Below are positions 3,456 to 24,233 of a stretch of DNA of 64,000 nucleotides, piece after piece. The position numbers and the translations under genes are program-made. The first letter of the stretch is position 1, and each line of letters starts with the position of its first letter. The notes beneath the pieces were generated by a model that did not search any database, was not told the origin of the DNA, and saw only the letters and a list, made by a program, of their open reading frames with translations. The DNA is taken from contig JAPMXV010000057.1 of the NCBI GenBank assembly GCA_026936335.1, forward strand, positions 186,001 through 250,000, given 5' to 3'. The DNA is from Mantamonas sphyraenae STR306. Lineage: Eukaryota; Protista; CRuMs.

Positions 3456-5880
3456 ATGATGGGACGTACGGATGAGCAGGGGGCGTCGTCGACGTCGCAA
3501 AAGCGACATGGGGCCGGCGGTGTCAAGACCGACCGCGCGAGCCAGGCGTTCCAAGCACAACTGGAAGCGCGACGAGCAGAACGAGAGCGCAAGCGGGCAC
3601 AGATTGCGGAGCGGAAAGCAGAACGCAAGGCACAGGAAGAGTGGGAGGCGGAAGAAGCACGCAAGGTAGGTCTTTTTGCTCATTTCAACGGACATCCGCA
3701 AAGGCAGGCGGGAAAACGGCACCAGGCAGCTGACACGGGAGGAGCGGGACATGCACACACAGGCGGAGCAGCAAGCACGGATGGAAGAGCTGGAGAGGAA
3801 ACGGGCGTGGCTGGAGGAGGAGCGAGCACGGCTGAATGAGTCGTTGAACAGCAGTCGAGACGCAAGGAGTGTGTTGACGGAGGCGGAGAGACGGCAGCAG
3901 CGGAGCGCAGAGACGGACCCGCTGAGCCGGATACTGGAGGAGAGCGCAGGAATGGAAGTGAACGGGTCGTTACTGGACGACTTTTCGGGAGAAGATCCGA
4001 TGGAGTTTGTGGAAGGCGGGGGAGGAGGCAGTGGGGAAGTGGAGGAATTGGGAGCTGGGACGACAGAAGCCACAGAGACGCAGGGGAGGCATGGGACGGG
4101 CAAGGGCAATGGAGAGGCGTGGGAAACATCGTCGGTGGTGTCGAGGGGATCGAGTATGAGCCAGAGAAGCAGTGTACAGAAAAAGGGAGAGGCACGACGG
4201 GCTCGCGAGCGCGAGGCGAATCTGGAGGCTATTGCACGGCGGCAGGCACGGGAGGAGCGTGCACGTAAGATGCGGGAGGCTCTTGAAGAGACGGTGGCAG
4301 TTGGGCAAGGGACACCACCAAGCCAACATGAGCTGCGTGCACGGAAGCACAAGGAAAAAGTGAGTGGACGCAAGACGGCGCCGGGAGAGGTGGTGAACGG
4401 AGAGTACCAGTCGCCGTACAAGGTAAGGACACAGGGGAAAAGGCCGAAGAAGAGCCACTTTGAAGGATCTAGCAAGTCGAGTGGGGCTGGGGCGGACGAG
4501 AAGGAGGGAAGGGAACGAGTGGACCCGCGCAAGGCAGCACACAGTGCGAGTGCACGTAGTCTGAAGGGCACGACGGTGCATGGACGCAAGACGAAGCGGC
4601 TGGCATGGAGCGAAAAGGCACACAAGGAGGAGGAGGAAGAGGCGAGGGTGGCACGTAGGGTGAGCCAACACCACCGGACGGCGGACAGGAACCCACGCAG
4701 CAAACCATGGTCGGCAAGCAGCAAACACAAGGAGATTGTGGCCAACGCGCCGCTGAGCTACACTGCGGGGGCGCCGCCAATTCTGCATATGGATCGAGAG
4801 GATGTGACAGTGGTGGAGGAGGAGCCGAGGTCGCCAAAGCCACCTGTGCCACGGCTGGGAGTGCGTGGCGGGAGCACACAGAGGGAGGAGCCGGAAGAGG
4901 GGGTGCAACAGGTGCCGCTGAAGCCACCCGTGCCTGTGGTGAAGAACAAAAAGGTGCCGAGTGAGGAGGAGCCGATGAAGGCGAGCGATCTGCCGCGGAA
5001 GCCTGCAGTGCCGCGGTTTGACAATGTGGTGCGACGGCAAAACGCAGTGAGGGAGGAAGTGGAGCGAGAGAAAGAGCGCAAGGCGGAGGCAAAGAGGAAA
5101 CGGAAGCAGGAGGTGATGGCGGAACGGCGAGAGAGGAGGCGGCGTGCGCGCGTGGAGAAGGAGAGACATGCACAGCACAAGAGGGGGAGCAAGGGAAAGG
5201 TGAGGGTGCCACAGGGGGTTCCTTCACTCAAGTGGGACCCGCAGATGTTGACGAACGAGCTGGACGAGTCGTTCGAAGAGGCTGAACGGCAGGCGAGCGC
5301 ACGGAGCAGTGCGTTTGAGAGCGAAGAAGCGGAGCGGAGCTCGTTGATGGAAAGCATTTCCCCGCGCAAGAAGATGCAAGAGGAAGAAGAGGGGCAGGGA
5401 CAGGAGACAGAGGACGAGGAGGAGTGGGAGGAGGACGAGGAGGAATGGGAGGAGGACGAGGAAGAGGACGGGAGTGGAGGACGGGAGCTTGCGGAGAGGA
5501 GGAGCGAGAACAGTGAGGCGCTGTCGGACATGTTGTACATGGGCAGTCCGCGAAGTGGGAGCGAACGGGATGGAGGATGGTCGTCTGCGGGAGAGACTGA
5601 GTCAAGCGTCAGCACTTTGGGCATGGGGGGATTGACACCCAGGAGTGCGGCTGAGCGAAGGGCAACCCTGCTGGCACGAGCACAGGCACGCATTCAGGAG
5701 AGGATGGAAAAGAGGAGTGCCCTCATGGACGAGTGGAGTGGAAGCGAGAGCGAAGGGGACGTGGCTGTGGACGTGGAGTTTGATGTGAGGCGGGCCTTGA
5801 CACTACGGGAAAGGATCGAGGCGGCAGTGCGGGGAGATGTGGTGTCTGTGGGTGGATTGGAGGGCGACAAGGAGGTGTGA
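3456..5880 (+). CDS. Low-complexity, charged (E/R/K/S-rich) coiled-coil/disordered protein of unknown function
   Basis: ATG at 3456. Intron 3666-3762 (GTAGGT...gctgac...acacag) joins EEARK to AEQQARMEE in frame with the 734-aa ORF. Confidence 0.7.
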
Positions 5881-5947
5881 GTCGGGAGGGGTATTGCGAC
5901 AACGCGCGCAATCCAAACATTAACAAAACCCAACGACAATTCCGAAC

Positions 5948-6581
5948 ATGAACAAGAGCTGGATTGCCCTGCTTCTGATTGCCCTTAGCGCCTTTGCCCT
6001 CGCCGAAGAGGCTGCCGCCACAACGGAGGAGACTGCCGCGGATGCGGAGGTCGCCGACCAGGTGGAGGACGATATTGCCGCTGAGACGGAGGAGGAGGAT
6101 GCTGCGGTGGACAGCGATGACGCCGAGGAGGACGCCGAGGCCGATGAGGAGGAGGAGGCCAACGAGAGCGAGGAGAGCGACGAGGCTAGCCTGTACGTCG
6201 TTGGCGCGAGCGAGAAGAAAGCGCAACCCGCTCCCACCATCCCCCCTTTTTTTCCGCATTCGGCCGTTTGTGCTTTTGCTTTTGTGGGTGATTTTGGAAG
6301 AGCTGACACGTGTGAATGGATGGGATGACCACAGTGACACCGAGGTGAGCGACGCCGACGCAGAAATCGAGGAGACCGAGGACGAGACCGATGCTCTGCC
6401 CGAGGTGAGCAGCGACGAGTCGAACGAGGAGGATTCCGCTCTGGAGCAGTCTGACGCCTCCGAGGAAGATTCTTCGGACGAGGAGGACAGCGACAACGAG
6501 GAGGGTATCTTCAGCAAGCGTGGTGGAAGCAGTGGATACCGCGGTGGCCGCATCGGTGTCAACCCTTGGGGCGGCTGGTAA
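5948..6581 (+). CDS. Small secreted prepropeptide, copy 1 (163 aa): signal peptide, D/E-rich spacer, cationic Gly/Trp C-terminal peptide
   Basis: MNKSWIALLLIALSAFALA signal. Phase-2 intron 6193-6334 (GTACGT...gctgac...accacag). C-terminus GIFSKRGGSSGYRGGRIGVNPWGGW*. Paralogous to 15931-16635. Confidence 0.85.
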
Positions 6582-6765
6582 ATTGCGACCACACGTGCCG
6601 GGCAGTCGCCTGGCAGCAATTTGGTGATGTCGGTGGCAAAACGAGTGAATGAAAGCACGCGTGTTGTCCGCCAGTAGGGGTAGTTGCTGGTGTGTGGCGT
6701 CGGAAAAGCAGAGACCTGGGCCAACGCGGCGCAGGCGCTTCCAACGATTTTTGTCATCATTCACG

Positions 6766-9700
6766 ATGCACGAGATCGACGTGGATGGGAGAGACGTGGA
6801 GGGCAAAGACACATGGAAGCTACGCGTGCCGTCATGGGTGACACGAGGGCGGAGAGTGGCGGGACAAGGACTGCTCCTGCTTCTTCAGTGGCAGCATCCA
6901 ACTCCAGACTGGATGGTTGCCGTGTCCCTCTTTCTTGTGCATAGTCAAGCAGTAGCACTGCTCGCACCAGCAGGTGAGTGTACTTGGGTGCATTCAACCC
7001 AACACCGCGCAGGCGGAAGGTTGACAGACCTTTTCGTCCAGTTGTTCTTCCTGCGCGTCGAAAGAACACTTTTCGTCCAGTTGTTCTTCCTGCGCGAAGG
7101 AAGAACAACTCGACAAAAGTTCTTTGAACACAGCAGCACTGAATTGTGGTGTGCCAGAAGGGGACTTGGTCGTGGAAGACATATAACTCCTTCGAGTGAA
7201 CGTGTGTTTCGGGAGAGGACTCGTGGTTGTGATGAGTTCGCAGCGGCGGGCCCTTTTCGTCAAAAATCTACGATGAAAAAGAGTTCGACCCCAGGCTCGC
7301 AGAAACACGAGTGCTGGCACGAAACATCGATTCCAGCGGATTGGAAATGACCCTTACAGCATGCGATGAACCCATACATTGGTCGATGAGCACGTACGGT
7401 GAGCTCGTCGGAGAATCTGCTGACACCAAAATCCTTCTTTGCGAACAGGCATCCTGAGCGGACATGAATCTCACAGCGGCGGATCTCCCGTCGAACAAGT
7501 GATGCGTGCGTTGTTGCTTCTGACAGTGGCCGAGCACTTGACGGCGTGGGTTCAGGCCTTGGTGCTGGTCGTGTTTGGGCTTCTGGCGTTCACGATTTTG
7601 GCCACTTCCAGACAGTTCTTTCTGCTCATCTTCCCCGTGCGTGTGTTGCGCCAATTGCTTCCCGTGGCATCTTCTGTGCTGTACACACCGATGGTGTGTG
7701 TCCTACTGGCGGATGGCAGCGGACTGAGCTGGCTTTGCACGGTGCTCTTGTTCTTCATTGGATTCGCGTGGAATCTACTTGGATTTGACTCGAATCCAAT
7801 GTCCACGTCGGCATTGGCACGTCCGCATGGACGAGGCACCGCCATGTGGTTTGTGATCCGCAGCGCCTTGGCCATCGGTGCAATGACGAAACTGGGGGGC
7901 GTTTTGGACGATGAAGAGCGCGCACGGCTGTTTTTCATGGGCTATGCGGTGTTGGAGAGTTCCTGCGTGCTGGTGCAGTGTGTGATGATGCCTTTCTTTG
8001 CGCAGTGGATGAACCAGCTCTCGATCGCGCTCACAGTAGCTGGGATGAGTGGGACGCTGGTGGCAGCCGTGATGTCATCGGAAGAAGCATTGACGTTCAA
8101 CGTGGTGTGGGTTGTGTGCACTGGAACGTGTGCCGGCGTGGCGTGGATTGGCGTTGGACAACTTTACGACCGCAAGTTTCGCATGCCCATGGCCGGCGTG
8201 TGCGATCAAGACACTCGTATGGATCAGTGGGTGTATGTGGATCCATTCAACAGTGTGCTTGTGGTGGGTGGAGAGCCGCTTGAGGTGCGCTCAGCATTCG
8301 AAGTGGAGGTGTTTGCACGCTTGTTGGAGAACGAAGAGGACATGATGGCCTTCTACAAGTGTGCCCTGGCCCTGTTTCGACACAGTGCCTACTTGTGGCT
8401 GTGCTACCACCGACTCCAGCTCGCCGTGAGAGACGGTAAGAGCTCAGTCGACTTGGACAGTCTGTACGACTTGTTCCCACGCACAGACATCTCTCTGATG
8501 ATCGCGCTGGAGCGCACACGTATGTTGGACCACTCCAAGGATCTGTCTGGCCTTGCATCCCATATGGAACTGCAGGCAAGCCTGGATTTGGCAGAGTCGA
8601 GGCACGTGATGACGCTGCAGTTGCTGGAACGCTTCTGGAGTCTGCAGCAATTTCAGGAGGTGGACATGAACGAACTGGAGGCGCTGGTGTCCACCATTGT
8701 TCTGTGCCAGCGCAGGACACGCGCAAAGTACCTGGCGATGATCGATCGATTTCCACGCAAGCCGCGAGTGTTTCGAGCGTACGCTCACTTCATGGAGGAG
8801 GTGATGGGCAACGAAAGCGTCGCATTTCAGCTGCATGCCAAAGCAAACCAGCTGGAGGTGATTGTGGAGGCTCGGCGGAGGTGGGAATCGGGATTGGGAC
8901 ACAGCAGGTCATCGCTTGTGGTGAACCGAGCGTGTTCGATTGTTGCGGTGGACACTGAGTGTGTGCTGGATTGGAACTGCGCAGATCTTGTGCACAAACC
9001 CATCAGCAAGCTGTTTCTGGGCGACGGGATGTCCACGTCACACTTCAAAGAGAAGCATGTGTGGGCTGCTGTGTCGACTGAAGGCGAGCTCGTGCTGATC
9101 GAGGCTGTTGGTGAGGCGATGGAGCACGGTTTGACGTCAGTGGTCATCCGAAACGACCCGATGAAGTACGCGGGCCAGCTGCTGCTCGGATTCGAGGTGC
9201 GAGGAGTCAGCGTACCCACGTTGTGCCTGGTGGCGTGGAACAACTTGGCAGCTGTGTGGTGCAAAGAAGCAAATGTGCGCATCCAGACCTTGCGAGGCGT
9301 CCATGTGGACTCTGTGGTGGAGCCTGTGAAAGGTGGCAAGCGTGCGAGCGAACTGATGGACACAGCAGCGAAGGAAGAAGATGGACGGGCATGGGGCAAG
9401 TTCACTTTGCCTTTGCTTGCGTGCGGAGAGGTCAAGTGCCAGCTGATGTGGAATGAGCACCAGAAGGTGCTGTGTGTCGCCGTTGCTTCCGCACAGGTGT
9501 CCCATGCTCAGGCCGTTGTTCGACAACAGCGACGCAGGGTGTCCCACAGGGCACCTTGGGGTCGATCAACTCACACAGTGACACCGCCGACGTCGTCGAT
9601 GCTCACATCTCGTCGTGCATCCGTCGCCCCAGAAAGAAATCGACACGCAGCCGCAACAAGAGAAAGTGTGTGTGCCCAAGCATGCTTTGCTCTCGAGTGG

Positions 9701-12700
9701 TGGGAGCACATTGCAATCTGTCGACGAGGAGTCCGACACCCGCGCGCGTCACGAGGCAATTCTCGCCCGCGTTCGTGACTTGCGTGCACGGGTGGCACGG
9801 AATGGGTTGACATCGAGCAGCCTTGATGCTCGCCACAACGATGCGGTGCAGAGTTTGAAGCGTGTGGTGATGGCTTGCGTACTTCTAGCGCTGTCGCTGG
9901 TGGCACTGAATGCGGCCCAACGCATTTGGGTGCATCCCAATGGCACGTCCGCAATGACCCTACACGAAGTTCTCCATCACACTGGACGGGCAGTAGGCAA
10001 GAGTGAGCTTTACGCACGCATCCTTCAGGCGGACGGCGAGCGCGTAATGCTGCAGCGGAGTGCATCCACGAGCAATCAGTCGACGCATGGAAACTCGACC
10101 CGGAGACAGGCGTGGCTGGAGCATGTGCTTCAACTTGATGGTGTTCGGGACTATGGATCTCGCTTGCGGGTCTCGGGTCATCATTTGGCCGAAGCGAAGC
10201 AGAACATGCACGTCCTCCCGCCAGGATCGAGCAGGGCATCGGGTAGAATCATGTCCAACTCCTCTGTGCGTGTGTTCAGACGCAGCAAAAGCGGCGTCAA
10301 GGGGGGTTCAGACATGACTCTGTCTCCCATGGCGGCTACCTCGATAATGGCGCATTCCGTGTTGGCAGGAGCGGATGCAAACGTGTCTGCCATCAATTTG
10401 ACAACAGGGGCCTGGGATCGGCTCATGCACGGTTTTCACTTTGTGGTGGACAATGGCAAGGCTCTGCGTGGGGTGCTGGAGACCCAGTGCCTCGATGTGG
10501 TTCTCGAGTTTGTGGATGTTGTGCAACGGTTGGGGCTCGAGACGTCGTTGCGTGCGGCCAACGCCACAATTGTGCTGTTTTGCGCACTTGCGCTGGTGAT
10601 GCGCAAAAACGTGCATGCAACGTCATTGGAGAGGCGAAGGGCGACGATTGCGATTTCAAAGCTGGCCAAACCGGTCTTTCGGAGGCTTGCCACCCAGTAC
10701 GAGGCTTATGTTGCACGACACTCAGGTGCAGTGATGCCTGGAGTGGAATCGCCCTTGGATGTGATAGGGAGCGCACAGGCAAGCCCTCAATACGGCACGG
10801 AGGCTGGTACGCAAGGAGAGTCGACGCCGTCGATTTTGGACATGGAAGCGAGCGAAAGTGAGGATCTGAGGACACAACTGCGTTCAAAGGACAGGCGACT
10901 GTTGTTGGGCTTCGGGGTGACGTTCCTTGCACTGGGCATGGTGCTGGGACTGAGCCTGGCAACCCAGGAGCAGTTCTTGGCGAGAAACGAAGGACTGCGG
11001 GTGGCATGGGGCCTGCACAATGCGATCAATGATGCAAAGCCAATGGTGGTGGACTTTGTGCTCGCCGGATCCGTGTCGAATGCGACGGCGATGCGGGCGG
11101 CAGCCGGAAACGTGCGCAGATGGGTGGATTCCATGAATCGGGTGATGGCAGCGAATGGCACGGAACAGGACTTTGAGACGCTTCAATTGGTTTACACGCT
11201 GGATTTGTGCACGAAACACGCGTGCAAGACGGCGTGGGGGAGGCACCACGCTTTCCGGGGTGTGCTGGCGCTGGTGACGTCGTTTGCCAGAGAATTGGAA
11301 GATTGGGCGTCGCAAGGGACGATGGAGGGGAGTCGCGAAGTGGTTGCGAAACAGGTGTTGATTGAGCAGGAGGGGGTTTTGGTGTTTGCGGTGGAGAGGC
11401 TGGTGGACATGCTGATGGCTCGGATGGAGAGATTGATGAGTCTGTGGATTCCCTCGACTGTGATTGTGGATGGACTGGGAGTGATCTGCATTGTGTGTGT
11501 GTTTGGGGTGGTGTTGTGGCCAACAACACGGGATCTGGACGATGAGGCACAGCACATGCAATTTGTGCTGCTGACGATGCCGGACGAGGTGCTGGTGCAG
11601 GTGCCTCAGATTGGAGAGCTGCTGTATCTGTTCGATGATGATGAAGATGACAGCAATGTGAGGTCTGCCTCAGGGCAGTTGCGACAGCACCGGATCCGTC
11701 GCGTTTCCGAAGCAAGCGAAGACACGAACGGTGCATGGGCGGGGATTTTGCGGATGGCCAGGGGTCACAAGGTTGCATTAGCAACAGGTATCGCGGTGTT
11801 GTGGACGGCTGGGTGGTTGGTAGGCATGCTTGTGAACGAAAACGAGTCCGCTGACGGATTGGGCATCGTGCAAGCGGTGGTGGGCTGTGGCATCAGTGCG
11901 GTGCTGATACCGACGCAAGTGTCGACTACGATGATGATAGCTGGGCCTTGGGTCGTGGGGGCAGGAGGGTGGTCCATGTTGGAGGCGGTGACTGTGCTCG
12001 TGCCTGTGCAGGCCGTGTGTGCGAGCATGACGGCCTTGTGGCTGGTTTGGGGATTGCAGAAGGATGTCGAGTGGAAGTATGTTCGCTCAGTGGGTGTGGG
12101 GGTCCTTGTGGGAATGGGTGCGATGGTGCTGATGGGATTTGGGATCGGGGAGCAGGGGATGATGGGGTGGATGTTTCGCCGGATGGGCAACTGCTTTGGC
12201 CTGACCATCATGATCTGGTGGAATTCCCGTGAGGGCAGCCAAGACGACGGATTGGTTGGACCACGAACGCACGCGCTTGCACCGTACCTTGGGATTGTTG
12301 TGGCTGGGTTGACGCTGGTGGATTGGCAAGTGGGCGGGGTAGGGCACATCCTCGTCGCGGCGTCGATGACGCTGCTTCAAGGCAGGAAGATGAGGGAAGC
12401 TCTTCCGACCACAATGTGTGTCCTTGCACTTTCGAGCTGGATCCAAACCGCAGGCATGGCTGCAGGAGGACTGTACGCAAACATACGCGGGGAAATCGCT
12501 GCCGTTGGAGGTTGGTTGATGGTTTCATCCGTGTTGCTGAGCGTGTCGAGTCTGTGGGCGTTCAATCATTGGGAGCTGTGTCTGCGCTTGTTTGTTTTGT
12601 GGGCGTACTCCGGCTACGCTTTGGGGTATGCGCGTTCAAGAGCGGCGACGGAGGCAATCTCACTGGTGTTTGAGGTTTGCATTGGCCTCGGGCTGGGCTA

Positions 12701-12842
12701 CACCCTGAAAGCAGGGCGTTCTGCAAATGACCAGGTGGAACGCGCGACAAGGAATGTGGTGGGGCCAGCAGAACCGCAGAGCGATGGCGAGAGTCTGCTC
12801 CTGCTTGTCTCGGCAAGATTGAAAGAAGAGGACGTGAAGTGA
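6766..12842 (+). CDS. Large multi-pass membrane protein, TmcB/TmcC (tiny macrocysts)-like with degenerate PAS region and a C-terminal TauE/SafE-like hydrophobic domain
   Basis: Predicted exons 6766-6973, possibly 7360-7398, 7449-9496 and 9633-12842. N-terminal TM bundle. TmcB-like segment FPRKPRVFRAYAHFMEEVMGNE. PAS-like segment VVNRACSIVAVD...LVHKPISKLF. LLTMPDEVLVQVPQI motif. The intron joining the two long ORFs (9497-9632) has a weak donor. Confidence 0.6.
7030..7119. repeat. Intronic 39-bp-period tandem duplication plus imperfect inverted repeat (hairpin)
   Basis: cttttcgtccagttgttcttcctgcgcg occurs at 7030-7057 and 7069-7096. gaagaacaactcgacaaaag (7100-7119) is a near reverse complement of the repeat's first 21 nt. 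Confidence 0.85.
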
Positions 12843-12882
12843 TTGTGGAAATGAATCGGAGATGTTCATTCGTTGGATGTGA

Positions 12883-15823
12883 TCACCAGCGACCTCCACC
12901 GCGGCGACCTCCACCGCGGCGACCTCCACCACGTCGGCCACCCCAGGAACGACGGGAACGGCGCGAGCGACGAGCACGAGCAGCACGGGCACGAGCAGCA
13001 CGGGCACGAGCAGCGCGAGCACGAGCAGCGCGAGCACGGGCAGCACGAGCAGCAGCAGCGCGCGCACGGGCAGCACGAGCACGAGCGGCGCGAGCACGAG
13101 CAGCAGCAGCAGCGCGAGCACGAGCATGGGCGGCAGCACGAGCACGAGCAGCACGGGCACGAGCGGCAGCAGCAGCACGAGCACGAGCAGCGGCACGAGC
13201 ACGAGCAGCGGCGGCAGCACGAGCGCGAGCAGCACGGGCACGGGCGGCAGCAGCAGCACGAGCACGAGCAGCAGCACGAGCACGAGCACGAGCAGCAGCC
13301 TGGGCACGAGCGCGAGCAGCAGCACGAGCACGAGCAGCACGGGCACGGGCGGCAGCGGCAGCACGAGCGCGGGCAGCAGCACGAGCACGAGCACGAGCAG
13401 CAGCCTGGGCACGAGCACGAGCCTGAGCACGAGCACGGGCAGCGGCACGAGCGCGAGCTTGAGCACGAGCACGGGCCTGAGCGCGAGCACGAGCCTGAGC
13501 ACGAGCACGAGCAGCCTTACGAGCGCGGGCCTGAGCACGAGCACGGGCACGAGCAGCAGCCTGAGCGCGAGCACGTGCCTGAGCACGAGCACGGGCAGCC
13601 TTACGTGCGCGAGACGCAGCCTGGGCACGAGCACGAGCAGCCTTGGCACGTGCACGAGCAGCCTTGCGAGCACGCGATGCAGCCTTTGCGCGAGCACGTG
13701 CGGCCCGGGCGGCACGAGCGCGGGCCTGAGCCCTTGCGCGAGCAGCTTTGGCACGTGCACGTGTGGCACGGGCAGCCTTGGCACGAGCACGAGCGTTGGC
13801 ACGTGCCGCACGGGCCTTGGCGCGCGCTGCAGCACGGCCGCGCAGACCTGCCTTGCGAGCGTTGGCACGAGCCTTGGCCGCAGCGCGTGCAGCCAGGCCG
13901 CGGGCCTTGCGTGCTGCGCGCTCCTTGGCGCCACGCAGCGCAGCAGCGGTGGCACGGCGAGCACGGCGTGCCAAAGCACCAAACGACTTGGGACGCGATG
14001 TCTTGCCGTTCGTCTTCTTGCCCGAGAAGCGGTTGGAGATGCGGGACACCAGCCCCTCAACTGCCGATCGGTACGTGGACTTGATCTTGTCGTCCACCAG
14101 CCCCTTGACGTAGTTGCGTGCAAACGTGGCCGGCCCAAGCCCAGCCAACTTCTCCTTGGCCGCCTTCACAGCCTTGTTCACCAACGCACGTCCGGCCTTG
14201 GTGGACGTCAGGCGGCCCACAATGCTGCGTGCAGCCTTGCTGCGCAGCATGTTGTTGACAGCCTTGCTTGCGGCGAGACTCTCAAGACGCGTCAGCGCCT
14301 TGCCCTTGCGCACCGCCGTGGTGAGGGTCTTTTGGAGACCCGCAAGGCGCGGGTTGTTGGCAATGGCCGTCATCAGGCGCTGCTGGGAAGCAGTGAGTGC
14401 CCCCTTGCCCTTGGTGGCCAGGGAACGCAGAGGTCCGAAACGAGTGGCGAGATTGCCTGCAAACTTGCCAGCTCCCAGAGCCAGCTTGCCTGCCTTGGCC
14501 ACCGGCACCAGACCCAAGACTCCGCTTACAGCTGCTGCCTGCAGTTTCTGCTTCTGCGTGCCATCGGTAGCCAAGTAAGAGCCGAGGGCGCCGCCTGCAG
14601 CTGCGCCCACGGGCACACAGCCCGGTCCGCACGCCGCAAACCCAGCTGCGCCGCCTGCCACCATGCCAATTGTCTCGGCGTTGTCTTTGGCAAACTTCTT
14701 GCCCTTGGTGTATGCCACCTGGGCACCGTTGCCAATGGCAACACCGGCCGTGTGCAGCGCAGCTCCAGCCTCGCGAGCCACCGTCTTTGCTCCGTTGCCC
14801 ACTGCGCTCACAATCTCACCCGTCGTCATGGCTTTGATTTCGCCGTTGCGAACACGCTCACGGTTGCGGCGACGGATCGCAGCACCGCGCTCGTCCTGCA
14901 CCTCGCTGTCGCTGTCGCTGTCGCTGCTGCTGCTGTTGTTGGGGTCAACGGCACGAGTTTGCACAGGGTAACTCTTGCAAACGGCACGCACACTGAGCAT
15001 GGCATGCTGGAAGCGACGCATCTGCTTGCGGAGACGCCAGCGACGCTTCATCATGGCCGCGCTGGAGCGCAGACCCTTGGTGCCCACGCGTCCACTGGCC
15101 ACACGCGACGCGTAGTGACGCTGGTAGCGTTGGTAGCGCTGGATGCGCTGCATGGTGCGCGTCATCAGCTCACGTGCGTTGCTCAGCGACTTGGCAAAGT
15201 CTTCCGACGGCAGCTCTCGTCCACGCACGGCCTCCAGCAGTCGACGCTGCTGCAGCAGGTCTCGTCGCAGGTGCGAGAACGCACGGTCCGACTTGCTCAT
15301 GTCACGCGCAAACACGGCGTAGACAGGCTGTGCGATGCGGGGCTGCACGCTGTGGGGGGGAGGGGGGAGAGAAAAAAAAGGGGAGGGCGCGGAGGTTCGT
15401 TCGTTGGTGAGTTTTCGGAGGGAGGGATGGCGTTCTTTTTTGAACCCCCCTTTCTTTTGCCAACACTCACAAGCGACGGCGACGCAACCAACGTCGGAAC
15501 TGCCTACGCTCCTGATCGTCGGCGTCCATGTCTTCGATGTCGATGTTTGTCTCGGAATCGTCGTCCTCGTCCGAGTCTGCATCGGCGTCGTCCACGGCGT
15601 CGTACTCGCCGTCATTGTCCGACTCTGAGGAGGAAACGTCGTCGGCATCGTTTGCACGCTGCGTCTCCTCTTCAGGCAGGCCTTCGTCTGCCTCGCTGGA
15701 CATGGCCGACTCCACCGCCGACTCCGAGTCCGAAGACGACGACGCAGACGCATCGGACATGCACACGCACGCGCCAACCATCAAAAAGAGAAGGAAAAGA
15801 GCAAACTGTCTGTGGGCCGACAT
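12883..15823 (-). CDS. Secreted 939-aa protein: signal peptide, acidic pro-region, cationic helical region, glycine-zipper, long Ala-Arg repeat, GRRGG/Trp tail
   Basis: ATG at 15823 (MSAHRQFALFLLFLMVGACVC). Intron 15470-15350 (GTGAGT...ccccacag, phase 2) joins ...RRWLRRRRF to VQPRIAQ in the 964-aa ORF frame. Confidence 0.8.
12890..13970 (-). repeat. Coding low-complexity tandem repeat (GCT-CGT/GCT-GCT units) encoding poly(Ala-Arg), plus a 15-bp repeat encoding GRRGG
   Basis: Plus strand shows degenerate gcacga/gcagca hexamers for ~1 kb, and gcgacctccacc x3 at ~12889-12930. Confidence 0.9.
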
Positions 15824-15930
15824 GGTCCGCTCGAAAAGAACTTGAATCGAGAAAAAAGGGTGTGGCGCAGCCGGCGCTCCGCTCGCTCGCGCCTTGCACC
15901 CAACCAAAAAACGACAAACACCTGCTAGCA
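15824..15930. promoter_or_regulatory. Putative bidirectional promoter between two secreted-protein genes
   Basis: Only 107 bp separate the divergent ATGs at 15823 (-) and 15931 (+). Confidence 0.5.
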
Positions 15931-16635
15931 ATGAGCAAGAGCCTGATTGCCCTGCTGTTGATTGCCCTGTGCGCCTTTGCCATGGCCGAAGAAACCGCCC
16001 AGGAGGCACCCGTCGCCGAGACGGCCGCGGAAGCGGACGACGCGGACCTGGAGAAGGAGATTTCCCTCTCCGCCGGCGAGGAAGAGATCCTGGCTGAGGA
16101 CGACGATGTCGAGAGCGATGCCGCCGACGAATCGGATGTGTCGGACGAGACTGAGGATTCCGAGGACAGCGAGGAATCTGCCCTGGACAGCGACAGCGCT
16201 GTGGAGGACGAGTACGTTTGCGGCCATCCATTTTTTCATCCGCCAATTCATCCGGGCCCGTTTCAACGCCCCTAGACACACATACACACGTGGTCGACAG
16301 ACATCCACGTGCTCACACACATGAACCCACCCTCCCCCCGCCCCCCGTCTTTTCCACACAGGTCCAGCGTGGACAGCGACGTCGAGAAGGACGCCCTGCC
16401 GCAGGGCTCGGAGGAGGAAGCGGAGGATGAGTCGACTGAGGACGACGACAACGAGAACGACGAGGACGAATCGTCCGAGGAGGACTCTTCGGACGACGAG
16501 GAGGACAGCGACAGCTTCATCCCGCGCCACATCACCATCCCGGGCTTCAAGACCCCCAAGAGGGGTGTGACGCTCAAGAAGGGCGGCACGAAGAAGCAGC
16601 CCGTTGCTGGCATCAACGGATGGTGGAACTGGTAA
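15931..16635 (+). CDS. Small secreted prepropeptide, copy 2 (184 aa): signal peptide, D/E-rich spacer, cationic Trp-ending peptide
   Basis: MSKSLIALLLIALCAFAMA signal. Phase-2 intron 16212-16361 (GTACGT...ccacacag). C-terminus FIPRHITIPGFKTPKRGVTLKKGGTKKQPVAGINGWWNW*. Confidence 0.85.
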
Positions 16636-16678
16636 TTTACACACATGGGTAAAGTCCACGTTTGGCACCCTCCTCACC

Positions 16679-17371
16679 CTACGTCGTCGTTGTGTCCTCA
16701 CTGTCGTCTTGGGCGTCCATCTCGAAACGTGGAGGCCTGTCCTCTTCGGGCAGCACCAGGCGCAGCTCGTCCAAGCCTTGCATGATGCGTGCCACGTGAG
16801 CGTTGACCTGGCGCAGTTGTTCGTTGATGCGAGCCAGGTTATTGTCCGCCTGCTTGCCAAAGCCCTTGAGGTCGCTCACTTTGAACGCCGTCCTGTACAG
16901 CACGTTGTTCCCTGCCACCTCCAGCGCACCCATGCTCGTGCGCAGGATCCCCTGCCGCCTGCATACCTCCTTCGAACACACCCTCAGGTAATTCTTGTAT
17001 CGGCCCATGATGCCCACCATGTGTTCGCCCGTAACCACGTCCAAGTTCTCCTCCGCTGGCGCTCCCAGCAACTTGCTCCACGAAAACTGCGTCTCCGTCG
17101 ACGACTTGATCAATGGCTCCATCGGAGCCAGCTCCCTCAGCCGCGCCACGTCCGGTTCCACCTGTTCCTTGCGCCCTTCTAGCCTCTTCTTCTCTGTGAA
17201 GCTTGTCACGGTGATGATTTTCCCTTCCCGTTCCTCCGCCTCGTTTTCCGTGCCCACTTCCTTTGAGTACGACGCGTACGGGATCTCCTCACCCGCGTCT
17301 GCGTTTGTCTCCACCTTGCGTTTGCCCTTGCTCTGTTCGCCACCCGTTCCACTCGACTGTTCGTTGCCCAT
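16679..17371 (-). CDS. BORCS5: BLOC-1-related complex subunit 5 (myrlysin/LOH12CR1)
   Basis: Myristoylation-type start MGNEQSS. RYKNYLRVCSKEVCRRQ and C-terminal LDELRLVLPEEDRPPRF match the BORCS5 pattern. Confidence 0.8.
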   Translation of the reverse strand: MGNEQSSGTGGEQSKGKRKVETNADAGEEIPYASYSKEVGTENEAEEREGKIITVTSFTEKKRLEGRKEQVEPDVARLRELAPMEPLIKSSTETQFSWSKLLGAPAEENLDVVTGEHMVGIMGRYKNYLRVCSKEVCRRQGILRTSMGALEVAGNNVLYRTAFKVSDLKGFGKQADNNLARINEQLRQVNAHVARIMQGLDELRLVLPEEDRPPRFEMDAQDDSEDTTTT

Positions 17372-17545
17372 GTGGTGTTTCGAATTCCCCTGCCTCTGCA
17401 TGGGCACCATGCACAGCACCCACGTCCCCCCCCACCCCCCCCGCGAGCACCCTGTGTGCCCGTGCTCGTGCGCATGCACCAGCAGACCGTTGTGTGGGTT
17501 GTTCAATCCAGTGCAATCACGTGTGCTTCATTGTCGCAATCTTGC

Positions 17546-19297
17546 TCACCCGTCCTCTTCTTCAACCTCATCCTGTCCCCACACGTCCTCTTCCCTGTCC
17601 TGACGGCCAAGGCCCTGACTCGACAACTTGAGCATTTGCTCGTGCAGTGCTCCCGACGAGGCAAGAACCTTCTGCTGCTCCTCAAACTCGGCCTCCATCT
17701 GAGCCAGCTCGCGATCGACAAGGCTGGCTTTGCCTGCTGCGTCGTTTGCCATCTCCTGCGCCACATCCTCCTCCTCGCGAGCCTTCTTCACCTGTTGTCG
17801 CTGCACCGCCGCACGAAGGCGTTTGGCAAACGACATGGTCACCATCGGGTTGGCTGAGCTTTCCTCCGACTTTGGGATGATCACCGTCGACATTTCCAGA
17901 TACAGGGCAATCATGGCCAGGCGGTCGATGCTCACCTTGTTCAACCCATCCGTCATGCTTGCCTCTGCGCATTTGTACATCGCCCGCATCGTTTGGTGGT
18001 GTGTCGTCTGCACTCCCGGCACCACAGGCACGAGCACCTCTTCAAACTCGTCAAACGTCAGGTAGTTGCGGTAGAAGAGGTCGTGGTTGCGCAGCAGCCG
18101 CCGCATCTTTTGGAATCGAGGCTCGATCTTCTTCAGCAGCAGCTTGTTGTAGTACTGCACCAGCGACTCTGCGCTCACGTTGTTTTCGCAGAACATCATG
18201 TAGTCCTGCACCAGGATTTCCAGCTGCTCCTTCAGATCCTCGTCAGGGTACAGCTCCGCCATGAGCTCGCGAAAGTCGGCCTTGGTTTCCATCGGCCTAC
18301 CAGTCTCGCGCAGATGCTCCTCCAGGTGGCGGACAATTCGCCACGCGCTGTCGTCCTCCACATCCAGGAACAACTGGATGAAAAGGTCGATTTCGTCGCG
18401 CGAGCCCTCGTACGTGTACAGCGCCTTGAGGTAGTCGTGCATCACGTTGAGCACCACGTTGTCCATCCCGCCGTACTTGTACTCAAAGTACTCATGCACA
18501 AACTCCTGGAACGGCTTGATGCTGCCGTGCAGGTTGTCGTTGGCCTCTTTCATCGTGTACGTCTCACGGATCATCATCATCAGCCTCTGCAGGGTGATTT
18601 CCCTCTGCACACGCGGCACAAACCCGCCCCACTCTTTGTAGATGTCAAACAGCGGCGATTCAGGCAGCTCCTCCGCCGTCCGCGTTCTGTACACGTTGCT
18701 CATCTTCTCATCCACCACAGACTGTTGGATGCGCAGCTTGGGCCGCGCCAGCCGCACGTGTGTGGTCCCGGGAGACACGCGAAGGGTGTACTCGGTTTCC
18801 AGCCGATGAGGGCACATGAGGATTCGGTCCCCGCACTCCACACACAGCTGGTCCCTGTGTTGCATCCGCTCCAGACGGAAGGTGTTGCCCTCGTCTTCCG
18901 ACGTCAGCACCTGGATCCCGTACGCGTTGCGTTTGTTCATCAGCACGCGCGCCACCTCGTCCTTGTTGTCGTTCACCTGTGCCTCCAGCCACTTGATTTG
19001 CTGCTGCACATACTCCAGTTCCTCCTGACACTTTTCCAGGTCCGACACGAGGCCCTTGCGCAGGTTGAGAATCAGTGTTTCCGCACTCATCTTTTCCAGA
19101 GCCTGCGCGTGATCCTGGTCGTATTTCGTCACCAGTGTCGACTGCAGCTCAATCAGTTGCATTTCCACCTTGCGCGCCTCCTCCAGATCCTCCTTGAACA
19201 GCTCCTCGCTCCCGAGCACGTGCTCCTCGTTGAACCGTGCGTTGCTCGTGAACCCCGCAAACGCTGTGCGTCCCCCCAGTTGACGTGTCAGTGGATC

Positions 19298-19341
<44 letters not shown>

Positions 19342-20923
19342 CCAAAAACATACTCTCTTCCATGGAGTCAATCTTTGCGTGCTGTGCACTCAGCTGCTTG
19401 TTCTCGCGCATCACATCGCGCAGATCCATCTCATGGCCCTCCACCTTTTCGCTCATCATCTGAAACAGCTTGACGTGCTCACGTTCGCTGTGCGCCTTGT
19501 CGCTCTCCAGCTGTGCGTATCGCTGCTGCAGCGTGTGCAGCTGATTCTGCAACATTTGGATGCGCTTCGTCTGCGCCTCCATCTCCACCATTTGCGACTC
19601 GACTCGTTCCTTCAAGTCTTCCACCTGGGTTTCCCGGTGGTACAGTTTCGACGTCAGCTGCTCGATTTCCTCCTGTTTGCTTTGTTCGCCGCTGCTCTTT
19701 TCAAAGTACAGCCGCTCCACAAGCACATAGTACGGGATGCGTTCAATGGACGGACCACTCGTGGCCGTGAATCCGTACGAGCTGAAGATGGCCTTGTACA
19801 GCTCCGAACGCACCAGATCAAACACCTCCTCAAACGGCGCAAACAGCCGCATGATCTGCTCAAACATCCTCCACGTGATGGCAGTGCGCAGGATGTGTGG
19901 CTTGTTCTCTGGAGTGCGTGTCTTGGCCAGCTCCTCCTTCAGCTTCACCTCGTAGTACAGCGCCGCGCTGCGTGCTTTGAACTGCATCTGGCTCGGATCC
20001 CCGTTCCAGTCAAAGCCCAGCTCTTCCATGTGTCCGTCCTGCAACTGGTACTGGAATGGCGAGTCGTCCAGATTCTCAACGCCACTCATGGATTCCAAGT
20101 ACCCGAGCCCTCCGCTGGCCCCTCGCTCGCTCTCACTCTGCTTCAGCATGCGCACGGGCATGCTTTGCGAGTTGGACATGTCCCCTTGCTTGCCACCACG
20201 CCCTTTTCTGTGCCTCCCCTTGACCCGTAGTCCTGAATATGTCTCTGGGCGCAGCTGAGCCTTGCGCCTGGCCGCCGCCTCAGCCGCCGCTGCCTCTTCG
20301 TCTTCTTCGTCGTCCTCTTCGTCGTCCTCTCCTTTGTCCAACCCTCGGTTTCTTCGGCCCCTTCCTCCTTCCATGGTCATGTCCTCCATCCCAAGTCCTC
20401 CTGGCGAGTCGATGGCATCCAGGTCCAGCCTCAGCGCCGCCTCCAACTGATGCAGCTCCGATCGGTCCTTGCGCACCGTCTCCATCTTTTCGTTGTCTTC
20501 TACAATGTGGTGCGTATGCAAGTCTAGGTCTGCGTCCTTTTCAAACGAAAACTGAAAGTCGTTGCCCTCCGACGCGCCAGTGTTTGTCGCCTTTGCATCT
20601 TCCTCGGACCGTTGCGCTTCCGCGGCGGCTCCTTTCCCGTGGCTCTGGCGCCCGCTCCTGCTTCCTCCACGCGACAAACTTTGCGATGTGTCCCCCTGTG
20701 TCTTCGGCCGTCCGTGACTGCTTCCCCTGCTGCTCCTGCTGCTTGCTGTGTGTCCTCTGCTCGGCGGCTTGCGTGTCTGGAAATCCGTTTGCCGGGCGTT
20801 GGTGTCAGCGATCACCCTCCTCGCACATCCATCTCTCGACGGCGTCGGTCCATGTGGACATTCCTCGGTGCTCGATGCACACACTCTCACGGACAGAGCA
20901 CACAAACTCACCTGGCTGCTCAT
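17546..20923 (-). CDS. Coiled-coil protein with C-terminal EF-hand-like region, TSNAXIP1-like (possibly flagellar)
   Basis: Long ORF with probable in-frame introns 20911-20777 and 19353-19264. Central coiled coil, CVECGDRILMCPH motif, FQEFVHEYFEYKYG and YLTFDEFEEVL segments. Confidence 0.6.
19299..19338. repeat. (CT)n/(GA)n microsatellite within a predicted intron
   Basis: About 20 CT units seen directly. Confidence 0.95.
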
Positions 20924-21276
20924 GGGTCGGGTCCGAGTTTCCTTTGCGGCCAACTCGCGTTGCTACTCTGGAGGACAAGAAGACACGGTCCAACAGTCGG
21001 GGATGGAGGAGAGGTGTCCATTGATTTGGGTTTCCATGAAAATCTCGTCCATCACCTGATCCATGGACGAAAACGCAACGCAACTCAGGTTTCAAGTGGA
21101 CCAAGCATGTGGCTTTGTTTGTTGTCGGCCTTGTGTGTGCGACTGACTGGATGACACCGCTACGGTCACTGCCCACTCTCTCTCTCGCTTTCACCCGCAT
21201 TGCAACGATCACGACGCGGCGTGGCAGCACGAGCCGGCGCGCAGACAGCTCCTTTCAGCACGCAAAATCACAACCT

Positions 21277-23976
21277 TCAAACACGGCGGCGCTTGCCCTG
21301 AGCCTTGGAACGAGCCTGAGCCTGAGTCTGAGCCTTGGCCTGGGTCTGTGCCTGGGGCTTGCCCTGGATCTTCGCCAGCAGAGCATGGCTGCGCTGGAGA
21401 AGAGCCTCGCGACGCTTGAGCATGGTCGCGTGCATCTTGCGCTGCGCGCGTGCCAGACGACGGTCCTGCTGGTTGAGGGCAGCCAGGTTCTTGGTGCGAT
21501 CGTTCAACGTCACGTTGACCTTGCGCACGTGCACCTGGTAGCTCGTCAGCTTGCGCTTCAGACGCTGCATCGCAGCCACCATGGCAGCGACAGCCTGCTT
21601 ACGCTTGCGCTCCTGCGCGGCTGTTGCCTTCTTGATGCCCTTCACGACGCTCGTGGTCTTGGCGTGCTTCTTCTGGACCTTGTTGGCCAGCTTGGTGCGG
21701 AAGCGGTTGATGCGCTTGTCCAGCTGGCTCACCTTGCGGCGGATCGTCACACACAGCTCACCTGTCGTCTTGCCAAACTTTTGGCAAGCGCGCAGAAACA
21801 CGCGGTGGTGCTTCTTTACGTTTTCCAGGCGGTTGCGGCGCGCGCGGTATGTGGCCAGCGCCCGGTTGTACCACGCCACCCACTGGTTCAGGGCTGCGTG
21901 CAGGCGGTTCGTCACACGGCGGAACGCCACCGAGCGGTTGTCGATCTGCGAGCGCGTGCGCAGCATGCGTGCGTGCAGCAGGCGCATGACCTTGACAAAG
22001 CGCTTCAGGGAACGGCGCGTCTTGGTCTGGTCGGCTGTGTTCTGGCGAACACGCTTCTGGATACGCTGGTGCAGCGTCGCAAGCTTGGTCTGCAGCTTGG
22101 CTGCGTCCTTGCGCGTCTGCTTGTGCAGGTTGCGGATGCCCTTTACAATGCGGCGACGCACATCGCTGGTCTGCATGTCCGAAACATCCTGGCTGCAGTC
22201 CGAGCAGTGACCCAGCTCGTGGGCCATCTCGTTGCGCAGCGTGTCGTACTCGATCGCTGTGTTGTAGTCCGACAGTCGCTGCTCTGCGTGTGCCTCGTCC
22301 AGCGATTCTTCCTCGCTGTTCGACGCCTGCAGCGACGCCTTCAGGTCGCGCACCTCGTCGGCCATGCCGCTCTCGCCTGCGCTTCCCTCCACGTCCTCGT
22401 AATCCGACGACGAGGCGCTCTCGGGCGCATACTCTGCCGTCTCCGAGTCCATGTCCTCGTCCTCGTCCACCAGATCGGCTGCCTCGCTGGGCAGCTCGGG
22501 CTGGCGGTCGGTGTTGCGCAGCAAGCCCATGTCGGCCTTTTGCGGTTCCTCCGTCAGCCACACGCCACTGTGCTTGGCACTGGCCGTCGCTCCGGCGCCG
22601 CCGCTGCTACTGCTGCTGCTGCTGCCGGCCGGCTTCTTCGTGACATGATGGTGGGACACGATACCCTGGTCCTGGTCCTGGTCCTCGTCGGCCACCAGGT
22701 CATCGTCGTCGGCGTCGTCCATAAGCGATGCCTCGTCGACCTTGGTGCCCTCGTCGGCCTCGTCCGCGAGGTCTGCGTCTTCCTCCGAGCTGCGCACCAC
22801 CTCCTCGTCCTCCACGTCCAGGTCCTCGTCGTTGTCGGCAATGTCCAGTTCCGCGGGTTCGTCAAGCGCAACCTCTGCGGTGCTGGCAACCTTGTTTGCC
22901 GTCGTTGTTGTTGTTTGCGTCTCGCTCAATGCGTCCGCTGTGTTCTCGGTCTTGCTGCTGCTCGCACGCTTGCTGGATGCTTCCAGCTCCTGTGCCGCTT
23001 GCTCCTCCTCCTCGCTGCTGTCCTTCAGGTTGTCAGCTGCGTCGAGGCTGCTGACCACGCTGGGTTCCGTGCTGCTCGAGTCCACCACAGCTGCCTCGGT
23101 GCTAGGCACCAGGCTGCTGCCGGCTTCATCGGCAGACGAGTCTTCGTACTCGCCTGCAGGAGTGGTCTGTTGCGAAACACTTTGTGTCACAGGCGCGTCG
23201 TCGCTGCTGTCCACCACCGTGGGCACTTCCGACGACGACACCGCCTGCTGCACGCTGCTCGGCTTCACAACCACATTCGTCAACTGTGCCATGTGCGCCG
23301 TCCCACATCCATGCCATGTGTGTCAGTTTTGACGCTGTGCATCCAGCCTCTTTGTCTCCCTCGTGCTCCAGCCTCCCGCGAAAGGACATCCGCAATCGCA
23401 CAATTCGCTGCTTGCGACGTTTGCCCTGGACAAACCCTCCTCAGCACTGCCGCACTGCACATCGACACGTCGCATACGCCTGCCCTGCGTCTACACGCAT
23501 TCACCACTCTGTGAAGCTGGCTCTGCGACGTCTCTCTGCGCTGTGTCTGGCTGTGGGGCGCCAGGGCGGTGCGCACGCGCCCGTTTTTTTCCCTCCCCAT
23601 CCAGCCCCGAATCTACCCGTCCGGCGTCTGCCTCCCACAGCCCACACATGGGCTACTGCACGACTGCACTGTGCGCACACATGCACCGACAATCTGCTGC
23701 ATGTGTGCGCACTGTGCGCCTGCATGCCCTGGGCGTGTCCCGCAGCGACGCAAGACGGGCATTCGTCGGAGAGAACCGGAAAAAGCTTCGAGCGGCCGCT
23801 TCCTCTTTCTCCCCACTCCCTTGCGTCCCTCCTTGTTCTCATGTGACACAACTTACCGAAGGGCTGTGTGCGTTTGCAGCGGACACAAAGGTGTTTGAGA
23901 CCAGCAACAACACAACAAAGAACACAGACACACGAGCGGACTGAACGGAGCGCATTGTGGTTTGCAACGTGCTCAT
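21277..23976 (-). CDS. Secreted ~708-aa protein: signal peptide, S/T/D/E-rich N-terminal half, K/R-rich helical C-terminal half
   Basis: Exon 23976-23857 (…VSVFFVVLLLVSNTFVSAANA; alternative ATG at 23955). Phase-0 intron 23856-23284 (GTAAGT...actgac...gcacag). Exon 23283-21277. Confidence 0.75.
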
Positions 23977-24233
23977 TCTTCCCGTAGTCTGTGAGTTCCT
24001 GTTGGGGTTGTCTTGGGTTCTCGTAAACGTCCTTGGTTCAGCTATTCCGGTACCGGTGATTGGTTTAAAATGTAAGCGGCTGAACGACTCGCTTCCTTGG
24101 TTCGGATGGTCCGGCGGGCGCAGGCGTCTGGTGAGCAAACACAAAAACCCCGGAAGCCTCGATGAGCAGCAGCAGCAGCAGCAGCAGTAGTAGCAGCAGC
24201 AGCAGCAGTAGCAGCAGCGAGGATCGACGGGAC

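Follow-up and report, generated by a model that had tools for sequence, protein, structure and literature searches.

Four Mantamonas sphyraenae genes joining a signal peptide to segregated acidic and basic blocks: candidate secretory pro-proteins with acidic escorts

The flagellate Mantamonas glides, feeds on bacteria and belongs to CRuMs, a clade that branches deeply, close to the base of Amorphea. For Mantamonas sphyraenae, a FALCON assembly of 25.06 Mb in 78 contigs with a GC content of 59.19% has been published (PMC10492846). Here, a stretch of 64,000 nucleotides from strain STR306 (contig JAPMXV010000057.1, positions 186,001 to 250,000), termed the window, with a GC content of approximately 59%, was analyzed, and genome-wide searches covered 25,061,354 bases in the 78 contigs. 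Four genes, termed g1 to g4 along the window, had been described in a preliminary manner as a cluster encoding secreted proteins, in each of which a signal peptide precedes an acidic block that switches abruptly to a basic one. Two-exon models rebuilt from the sequence bear out their positions: all four are in frame, contain no internal stop and have GT..AG introns, encoding 163, 939, 184 and 708 residues for g1, g2, g3 and g4, respectively. The predicted intron donors, in the same order, are GTACGT, GTGAGT, GTACGT and GTAAGT (strong), the splice junctions being predicted from sequence alone. Signal peptides were judged by direct reading for the n-h-c pattern, and each protein begins with one, in which a short, positively charged n-region leads into 11-14 hydrophobic core residues and small residues occupy positions -3 and -1. 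The switch from acid to base was also borne out: none of 2000 residue shuffles of the mature sequences reached the observed segregation of charge (z = 14.2, 36.7, 17.2 and 14.8), confirming that the observation is real and non-random.

The distribution of charge is far from uniform among the four proteins. In g1, an acidic block of 119 residues, containing 61 D/E and no K/R, carries a charge of -61 and is followed by a tail of 25 residues with a charge of +4, while in g3 the corresponding values are -61 and +8. The basic part of these two proteins therefore spans only 25-36 residues, and both are overwhelmingly acidic overall, with net charges of -56 and -52, respectively. In g2, an acidic block of -34 is followed by +193 across 834 residues, for a net charge of +160, and in g4 a block of -79 is followed by +73. 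A multibasic stretch lies at each charge switch, namely K-R before G-G in g1, K-R and K-K before G in g3, a run of four Arg in g2 and three Arg in g4. The GC content at third codon positions (GC3) ranges over 0.76-0.84 in g1, g3 and g4, which equals or exceeds that of neighboring control genes (0.66-0.78). The GC3 of g2 is 0.58, below the controls, because of its GCN/CGN repeats, and codon bias therefore gives its reading frame no support; the frame rests on continuity with a conserved core and with the C-terminal end. It can be observed that the Ala/Arg repeat DNA of g2 (window 12660-16275, both strands) is open in nearly all six frames, with alternative-frame open reading frames (ORFs) of 400-1050 codons reading as Leu/Val, Ser/Thr or His/Glu repeats. 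Only the Ala/Arg frame runs continuously with the conserved core and the Trp end.

The preliminary description treated the four genes as one system, a view that does not hold by descent. On sequence comparison they are three unrelated entities: the pair g1/g3, g2, which is a member of a five-gene family, and g4, for which the search of its own genome gave no paralogue. No similarity was found between g2 and g4, and a hidden Markov model of g2-family exon 1 scored g1 and g3 no better than block-preserving shuffles. A profile built from six signal-plus-acid exons retrieved only those six in the 25-Mb genome, three of them within 10 kb here, so that exons of this type are rare in the genome.

As predicted from the models, g1 and g3 encode a paralogous pair of small polyanions, each with a dibasic site followed by a short Gly/Trp tail. 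The two signal peptides share 78% identity, the introns of the two genes are alike in phase (2), donor (GTACGT) and location inside the acidic block, and their tails align as G-hydrophobic-x-x-K-[RK]-G-G ... G-[VI]-N-x-W-x-x-W-stop, while the acidic blocks have diverged beyond alignment (E 2.2). The G[VI]NxWxxW-stop motif was found only in g1 and g3 by a whole-genome pattern search, and the own-genome protein search revealed no third member of the pair. Two weak own-genome matches, L007 and L005, were rejected as relatives, being a poly-acidic stretch and a glycosyltransferase-like membrane protein, respectively. A terminal Trp is indeed present in three of the four proteins, as was pointed out in the preliminary description, but the feature is weaker than it looks. 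In the DNA examined from the M. sphyraenae genome, 34 of 669 open frames of at least 100 codons (5%) have a C-terminal Trp, and since g1 and g3 are paralogues, the three endings are only mildly unusual. The 5% share is itself well above the expectation from Trp frequency in this GC-rich genome.

The family of g2 comprises five genes, namely g2, one gene on C19, one on C15 (180000-189999) and a tandem pair on C12 (14000-23999). Own-genome matches of the g2 core reached 1.2e-17 and 9e-14, and the only block conserved throughout the family is this core, which spans about 110 residues and is built as a glycine zipper that surrounds a G-P turn, with 17 invariant columns in the alignment and C-G-P-x-C in three members. 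The core of g2 is modeled as all-helical with low confidence (predicted local distance difference test, pLDDT, 43.8). Sub-threshold Pfam matches to glycine-zipper, C19orf12 or DUF456 families were obtained in four of the five members, the best at 24.9 bits against a cut-off of 30, and g2 itself gave no glycine-zipper-type Pfam match at E <= 1. All five members possess an upstream exon with a canonical signal peptide and a D/E/S-rich block. The intron donor was examined in four of the five genes, and in all of these, g2 and three paralogues, exon 1 closes with a run of basic residues and, where acid gives way to base, a GT[AG]AGT donor in phase 2. Downstream of the core, each member carries hundreds of residues of basic repeats, the units of which differ from gene to gene, being Ala/Arg in g2 and RGG-like, RRPTRRV-like or Ser/Arg-rich in the others; three of the five end in G-x-W. 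Since the exon design is common to the paralogues while the repeat units differ, the layout of signal peptide, acidic block and cationic part appears to have been inherited and kept as the repeats turned over. The tandem genes on C12 start at 7044 and 4303 on the reverse strand and both end in G-x-W, one having RRPTRRV-type and the other Ser/Arg-rich repeats. In the C15 paralogue, the RGG-type repeat region (approximately 6500-8700 of the 180000-189999 stretch) is open in several frames on both strands, and the frame of its core runs into a Trp/Ser/Pro-rich reading, so that an intron or a change of frame must lie in the repeats.

In g2 itself, the signal peptide occupies residues 1-23 and the acidic block residues 24-105, with the basic repeats extending to residue 939. 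The basic part contains 173 Arg against 48 Lys, together with 263 Ala. The amphipathicity of the Arg/Ala repeats falls below that of shuffles (z -3.6), a result that speaks against a lytic helix of the classical kind and fits a rod that binds polyanions better. The basic half of g4 behaves differently in that its amphipathicity is above that of shuffles (z 3.5). AlphaFold predicted two helices of about 130 residues each in this half, spanning residues 2-133 and 135-270 (pLDDT 71.7), and Foldseek returned generic coiled coils only, at E > 1. The coordinates of the predicted features are collected in Table 1.

Table 1. Predicted features of g1 to g4 and of the spacer between g2 and g3 (positions in the window)
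Feature	Position	Strand	Remarks
g1 exon 1: signal peptide (5948-6004) and first part of acidic block	5948..6192	+	ATG, n-h-c pattern, GTACGT donor at 6193
g1 intron, 142 nt, phase 2, GT..AG	6193..6334	+	predicted; phase and donor as in g3 intron
g1 exon 2: rest of acidic block (to 6503), KR site, Gly/Trp tail of 19-25 aa (6504-6578) ending in Trp	6335..6581	+	
g2 exon 2: cationic body (+193) with basic helices, glycine-zipper core, Arg/Ala repeats and RGG-type end finishing in Trp	12883..15349	-	
g2 Arg/Ala-rich repeat region, about 315 aa	12958..13905	-	tandem arrays at 12964-13716
g2 glycine-zipper core with CGPGC turn	14446..14820	-	own-genome matches, family alignment
g2 intron, 121 nt, phase 2, GTGAGT..CAG, at acid/base boundary	15350..15470	-	predicted; same donor position in three paralogues
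g2 exon 1: signal peptide (15755-15823), acidic block (15509-15754, net -34), multibasic junction (15471-15508)	15471..15823	-	
Spacer between head-to-head start codons of g2 and g3, 107 bp	15824..15930	.	gene coordinates
g3 exon 1: signal peptide (15931-15987) and acidic block	15931..16211	+	
g3 intron, 150 nt, phase 2, GTACGT..CAG	16212..16361	+	predicted
g3 exon 2: rest of acidic block, dibasic sites, cationic Trp-rich tail (16525-16632, net +8) ending in Trp	16362..16635	+	
g4 basic domain (net +73), beginning at RRR junction	21277..22167	-	two long amphipathic helices
g4 acidic D/E/S-rich block (net -79 including end of exon 1); exon 2 thus 21277..23283	22168..23283	-	
g4 intron, 573 nt, phase 0	23284..23856	-	predicted; least certain junction of the four
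g4 exon 1: 40 codons encoding signal peptide, ending at GTAAGT donor	23857..23976	-	link to exon 2 inferred

The arrangement of the genes also bears on their possible relationship. Local duplication can account for the proximity of g1 and g3 but not for the head-to-head position of g2 and g3, since these two are not detectably related; the spacer of 107 bp between the g2 and g3 start codons is likely a shared promoter. Of the seven family start codons, five are preceded by 60 nt with an A+C content of 68-77%, against a 95th percentile of 65% in the window. These A+C-rich leaders lie at window positions 5888-5947, 15871-15930 and 23977-24036, at 7045-7104 of the C12 stretch and at 5048-5107 of the C15 stretch. 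The 60 nt upstream of g4 are 70% A+C, as in the other family leaders, and the enrichment could be either a general feature of 5'-leaders or one shared by the family. Between g1 and g2 lies an unrelated ORF (7439-9778, forward strand) with a TPR_TmcB domain (PF25474, 1.7e-15), which continues into a large membrane-protein ORF at 9615-12842.

Searches for relatives agree with the earlier statement that the proteins have no recognizable enzymatic domain. Pfam gave no family at E <= 0.01 for g1 to g4, and word-indexed protein searches with the whole of g4, its basic half and g3 exon 2 gave no homologue. An exhaustive profile search with the g2 core against 1.84 billion representatives gave 66 matches at E <= 0.001, the best at 7.5e-11, all of which are the zipper segment of assorted bacterial or phage proteins, whose own Pfam matches are limited to sub-threshold ones to glycine-zipper, C19orf12 or DUF456 models. 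No relative was found in the metagenome scan, sequence searches of the PDB gave no match and the ESM Atlas none for g4. For g2, the ESM Atlas suggested a weak likeness to Bacillota PT-TG/LXG pre-toxin regions (0.92, 147 shared features, recognition below the 2300 mark), which Pfam did not confirm, as no PF14449 or PF04740 match was obtained. No homologue outside the M. sphyraenae genome was found in the databases searched. As the proteins did not match themselves there, Mantamonas proteomes are apparently absent from these databases, and the proteins are lineage-specific as far as the databases show. Regarding the extrusome or dense-granule cargo considered in the preliminary description, no result connects the genes with either compartment: no Pfam, profile or Atlas match pointed to the trichocyst/mucocyst (TMP/Grl) proteins of ciliates, and the word extrusome is absent from the Mantamonas genome paper (PMC10492846).

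A candidate partner for processing was found in the same genome, namely a gene for a convertase of kexin/furin type with a Peptidase_S8 domain (3.9e-44) and a P domain (P_proprotein, 2.1e-28). It is located on C45 (304221-307469), where its ORF (94-2394) also encodes a C-terminal SH3 domain (2.5e-13), unusual for the class, and a second P-domain locus exists elsewhere in the genome. The genome search gave no match for a Fam20C-type kinase, and none was obtained in the whole genome for the silicon transporter PF03842, a blank that is not proof of absence. These negatives remove support from phosphoprotein and silica readings of the locus.

Precedents for the order of the blocks exist in animals and in diatoms. 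In proMBP-1, an acidic pro-piece (17-106) precedes the basic product (107-222); it is cleaved before granule storage, and is thought to neutralize the toxic cation and to protect the cell in transit (PMC11483036). The present proteins resemble proMBP-1 (PRG2) in having a signal peptide, an acidic pro-piece (about 90 residues in proMBP-1) and a basic product, the charge balance of g4 coming closest. They differ in that MBP has a C-type lectin fold with disulfides, whereas the proteins here are predicted to be helical, repeat-rich or of glycine-zipper type, with no detectable homology and with a balance of charge that fails for g2, g1 and g3. Indeed, neither a C-type lectin nor a defensin fold was recognized in g1 to g4, for which Pfam and PDB sequence searches gave no such match and the structure predictions were helical only. 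In the silaffin precursor Sil1p, residues 1-19 form the signal peptide and residues 20-107 an acidic domain of unknown function, after which comes a repetitive, strongly basic C-terminal part that is processed at RXL sites (PMC4557024). The order is that of g2. The repeats of Sil1p are Lys/Ser-rich KXXK units with polyamine and phosphate modifications in a silicifying host, whereas those of g2 are Arg/Ala-rich, and there is neither sequence similarity nor a silicon transporter match in M. sphyraenae. The diatom comparison class also names silacidins and cingulins.

Three further comparisons are more distant. The precursors of defensins, cathelicidins and amphibian antimicrobial peptides consist of a signal peptide, an acidic spacer, a dibasic site and a short cationic peptide. 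The layout of g1 and g3 is the same, but their pro-region is about six times the length of the peptide and far over-compensates its charge, and there are no cysteines and no homology. The core of the g2 family shares a GxxxG-type zipper around a GP turn with glycine-zipper hairpins (PF05433, PF13488, PF20721 C19orf12 and PF04306 DUF456). Its scores are below the gathering cut-offs (at most 24.9 bits against 24-30), and those families lack a signal peptide, an acidic pro-region and polybasic repeats. In sandcastle-worm cements, oppositely charged secreted proteins, phosphoserine polyanions and Lys/Gly-rich polycations held as separate proteins in separate granules, are condensed by complex coacervation. 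Oppositely charged, putatively secreted proteins are likewise predicted here; the cement is an animal system, and the kinase of Fam20C type has no match in M. sphyraenae.

The explanation favored here, held tentatively, is that the genes may encode pro-proteins of the secretory pathway, in which an acidic pro-region serves as escort to a polycation with affinity for anionic surfaces. It is preferred because of the layout itself, the multibasic sites at the charge switches, the convertase gene and the two documented systems with the same order of blocks; we infer secretion, cleavage, co-packaging and the target. A cleaved signal peptide would take each protein into the endoplasmic reticulum, where the N-terminal D/E/S-rich pro-region would keep the cationic part soluble and inert in transit. 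Subsequently, a convertase of kexin/furin type would cut at the multibasic junction, exactly at the charge switch, which in the g2 family is also the boundary between exon 1 and exon 2. The freed polycations, comprising the g2 family, with its glycine-zipper hairpin and uniformly charged Arg-rich rods, and the helical hairpin of g4, would target anionic surfaces, either extracellular or within the food vacuole, the likeliest being the envelopes of bacterial prey or the gliding substratum. g1 and g3 would be essentially free polyanions that also yield a short Gly/Trp-rich peptide after the dibasic site. As g3 diverges from g2 across the 107-bp spacer, it probably travels with g2 as a counter-ion.

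Several points weigh against this explanation. No homology is detectable among the three entities, so that a common function has design and proximity alone to support it. No k-mer was enriched beyond shuffles across the family promoters that would indicate a shared promoter motif, and no acidic partner gene was found head-to-head with the paralogues of g2. By construction, a basic cluster is to be expected where the charge switches, and its reading as a cleavage site is therefore weak. The predicted signal-peptide exon of g4 is only presumptively joined to the remainder of the gene. Regarding neutralization of the product by its own pro-piece, for which the preliminary description cited defensin and amphibian peptide precursors, the balance holds numerically for g4 (-79/+73), but a pro-piece in cis cannot neutralize g2 (-34 against +193), and g1 (-61/+4) and g3 (-61/+8) are nearly all "pro-piece" with charges that do not balance. 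The design of a secretory pro-protein fares better, being conserved in the position of the g2-family intron at the acid/base boundary and in the dibasic-GG site of g1 and g3, with a convertase gene present in the genome. The earlier interpretation as a whole is partly supported.

A second explanation is unlikely, but is the most probable of the alternatives. Stored together, the polyanions, namely g1, g3 and the acidic blocks, might condense with the polycations, g2 and the basic half of g4, as a complex coacervate held by complementary charge, forming an adhesive, gliding or prey-trapping matrix that attacks no membrane and possibly forms without proteolysis. The net charges have opposite signs (-56 and -52 as compared with +160), the divergent spacer is common to g2 and g3, and the Arg/Ala repeats of g2 are uniformly charged and not amphipathic, all of which would suit such a glue. 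The charges are nevertheless unbalanced, summing to about +48, the other g2 paralogues have no adjoining acidic partner gene, and it is not obvious what the conserved glycine-zipper core would do in a glue. A bolder proposal combines this idea with that of the escort. Here g3, with its paralogue g1, and g2 would be a matched kit of polyanion and polycation, expressed from one bidirectional promoter of 107 bp and packed as coacervate cargo that is adhesive, prey-trapping or bactericidal, and the signal-acid exon would be a reusable "escort" cassette for many secreted polycations. This is less probable than the glue; if true, it would add a kind of polyelectrolyte cargo system that has yet to be described in protists.

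The conserved tails of g1 and g3 raise another possibility, also improbable, in which these two genes encode prepropeptides functionally unrelated to g2 and g4. The product would be a Gly/Trp C-terminal peptide of 17-19 residues with an antimicrobial or signaling role, and the clustering would reflect local duplication and chance. In accordance with this, the dibasic-GG site and the G[VI]NxWxxW end have been kept despite the divergence of the acidic block, g1 and g3 are the only two such genes in the genome, and the convertase gene is present. Against it, the peptide would retain a net charge of only about +2 after cleavage, a polyanion of 120 residues is very large as the pro-region of a 19-residue peptide, and the head-to-head arrangement of g2 is left unexplained. 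Slightly less plausible still is that the proteins are not secretory, but are fast-evolving orphans of low complexity, such as RGG/Arg-rich proteins of the nucleus or nucleolus, or models that are wrong in part, with a charge pattern that reflects no common function. The failure to find a homologue outside the genome, the low-confidence fold of g2, the resemblance of the RGG-type ends to nucleolar glycine- and arginine-rich (GAR) tails and the purely predicted splice junctions are all consistent with this, yet all eight family starts have canonical signal peptides, the g2 family has kept its exon-1 design and the position of its intron, the GC3 of g1, g3 and g4 is that of real genes, and signal-plus-acid exons are rare genome-wide. 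Finally, silaffin-like precursors of a biomineral or scale, with an acidic pro-domain and a basic repetitive domain processed at sites of R-x-L type, are very improbable, for although the domain order is that of Sil1p and RRK-L/V-L ends exon 1 of two g2 paralogues, the genome has no silicon transporter match, the repeats are Arg/Ala-rich instead of Lys/Ser-rich KXXK, and no mineralized structure is known for Mantamonas.

The acidic escort of secretory polycations therefore remains the explanation preferred here. The proteins are new, while the principle of their design is already known from animals and diatoms. To our knowledge, nothing is known of the secretome of Mantamonas, of its handling of prey or of its adhesion while gliding. 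A conserved, lineage-specific design of an acidic escort plus a polycation would reveal a way in which strongly cationic proteins can be produced and exported without harm by a small bacterivore. Furthermore, the gene set, including a divergent polyanion/polycation pair, would be tractable for asking whether charge-masked antimicrobials or coacervate glues are used by protists.

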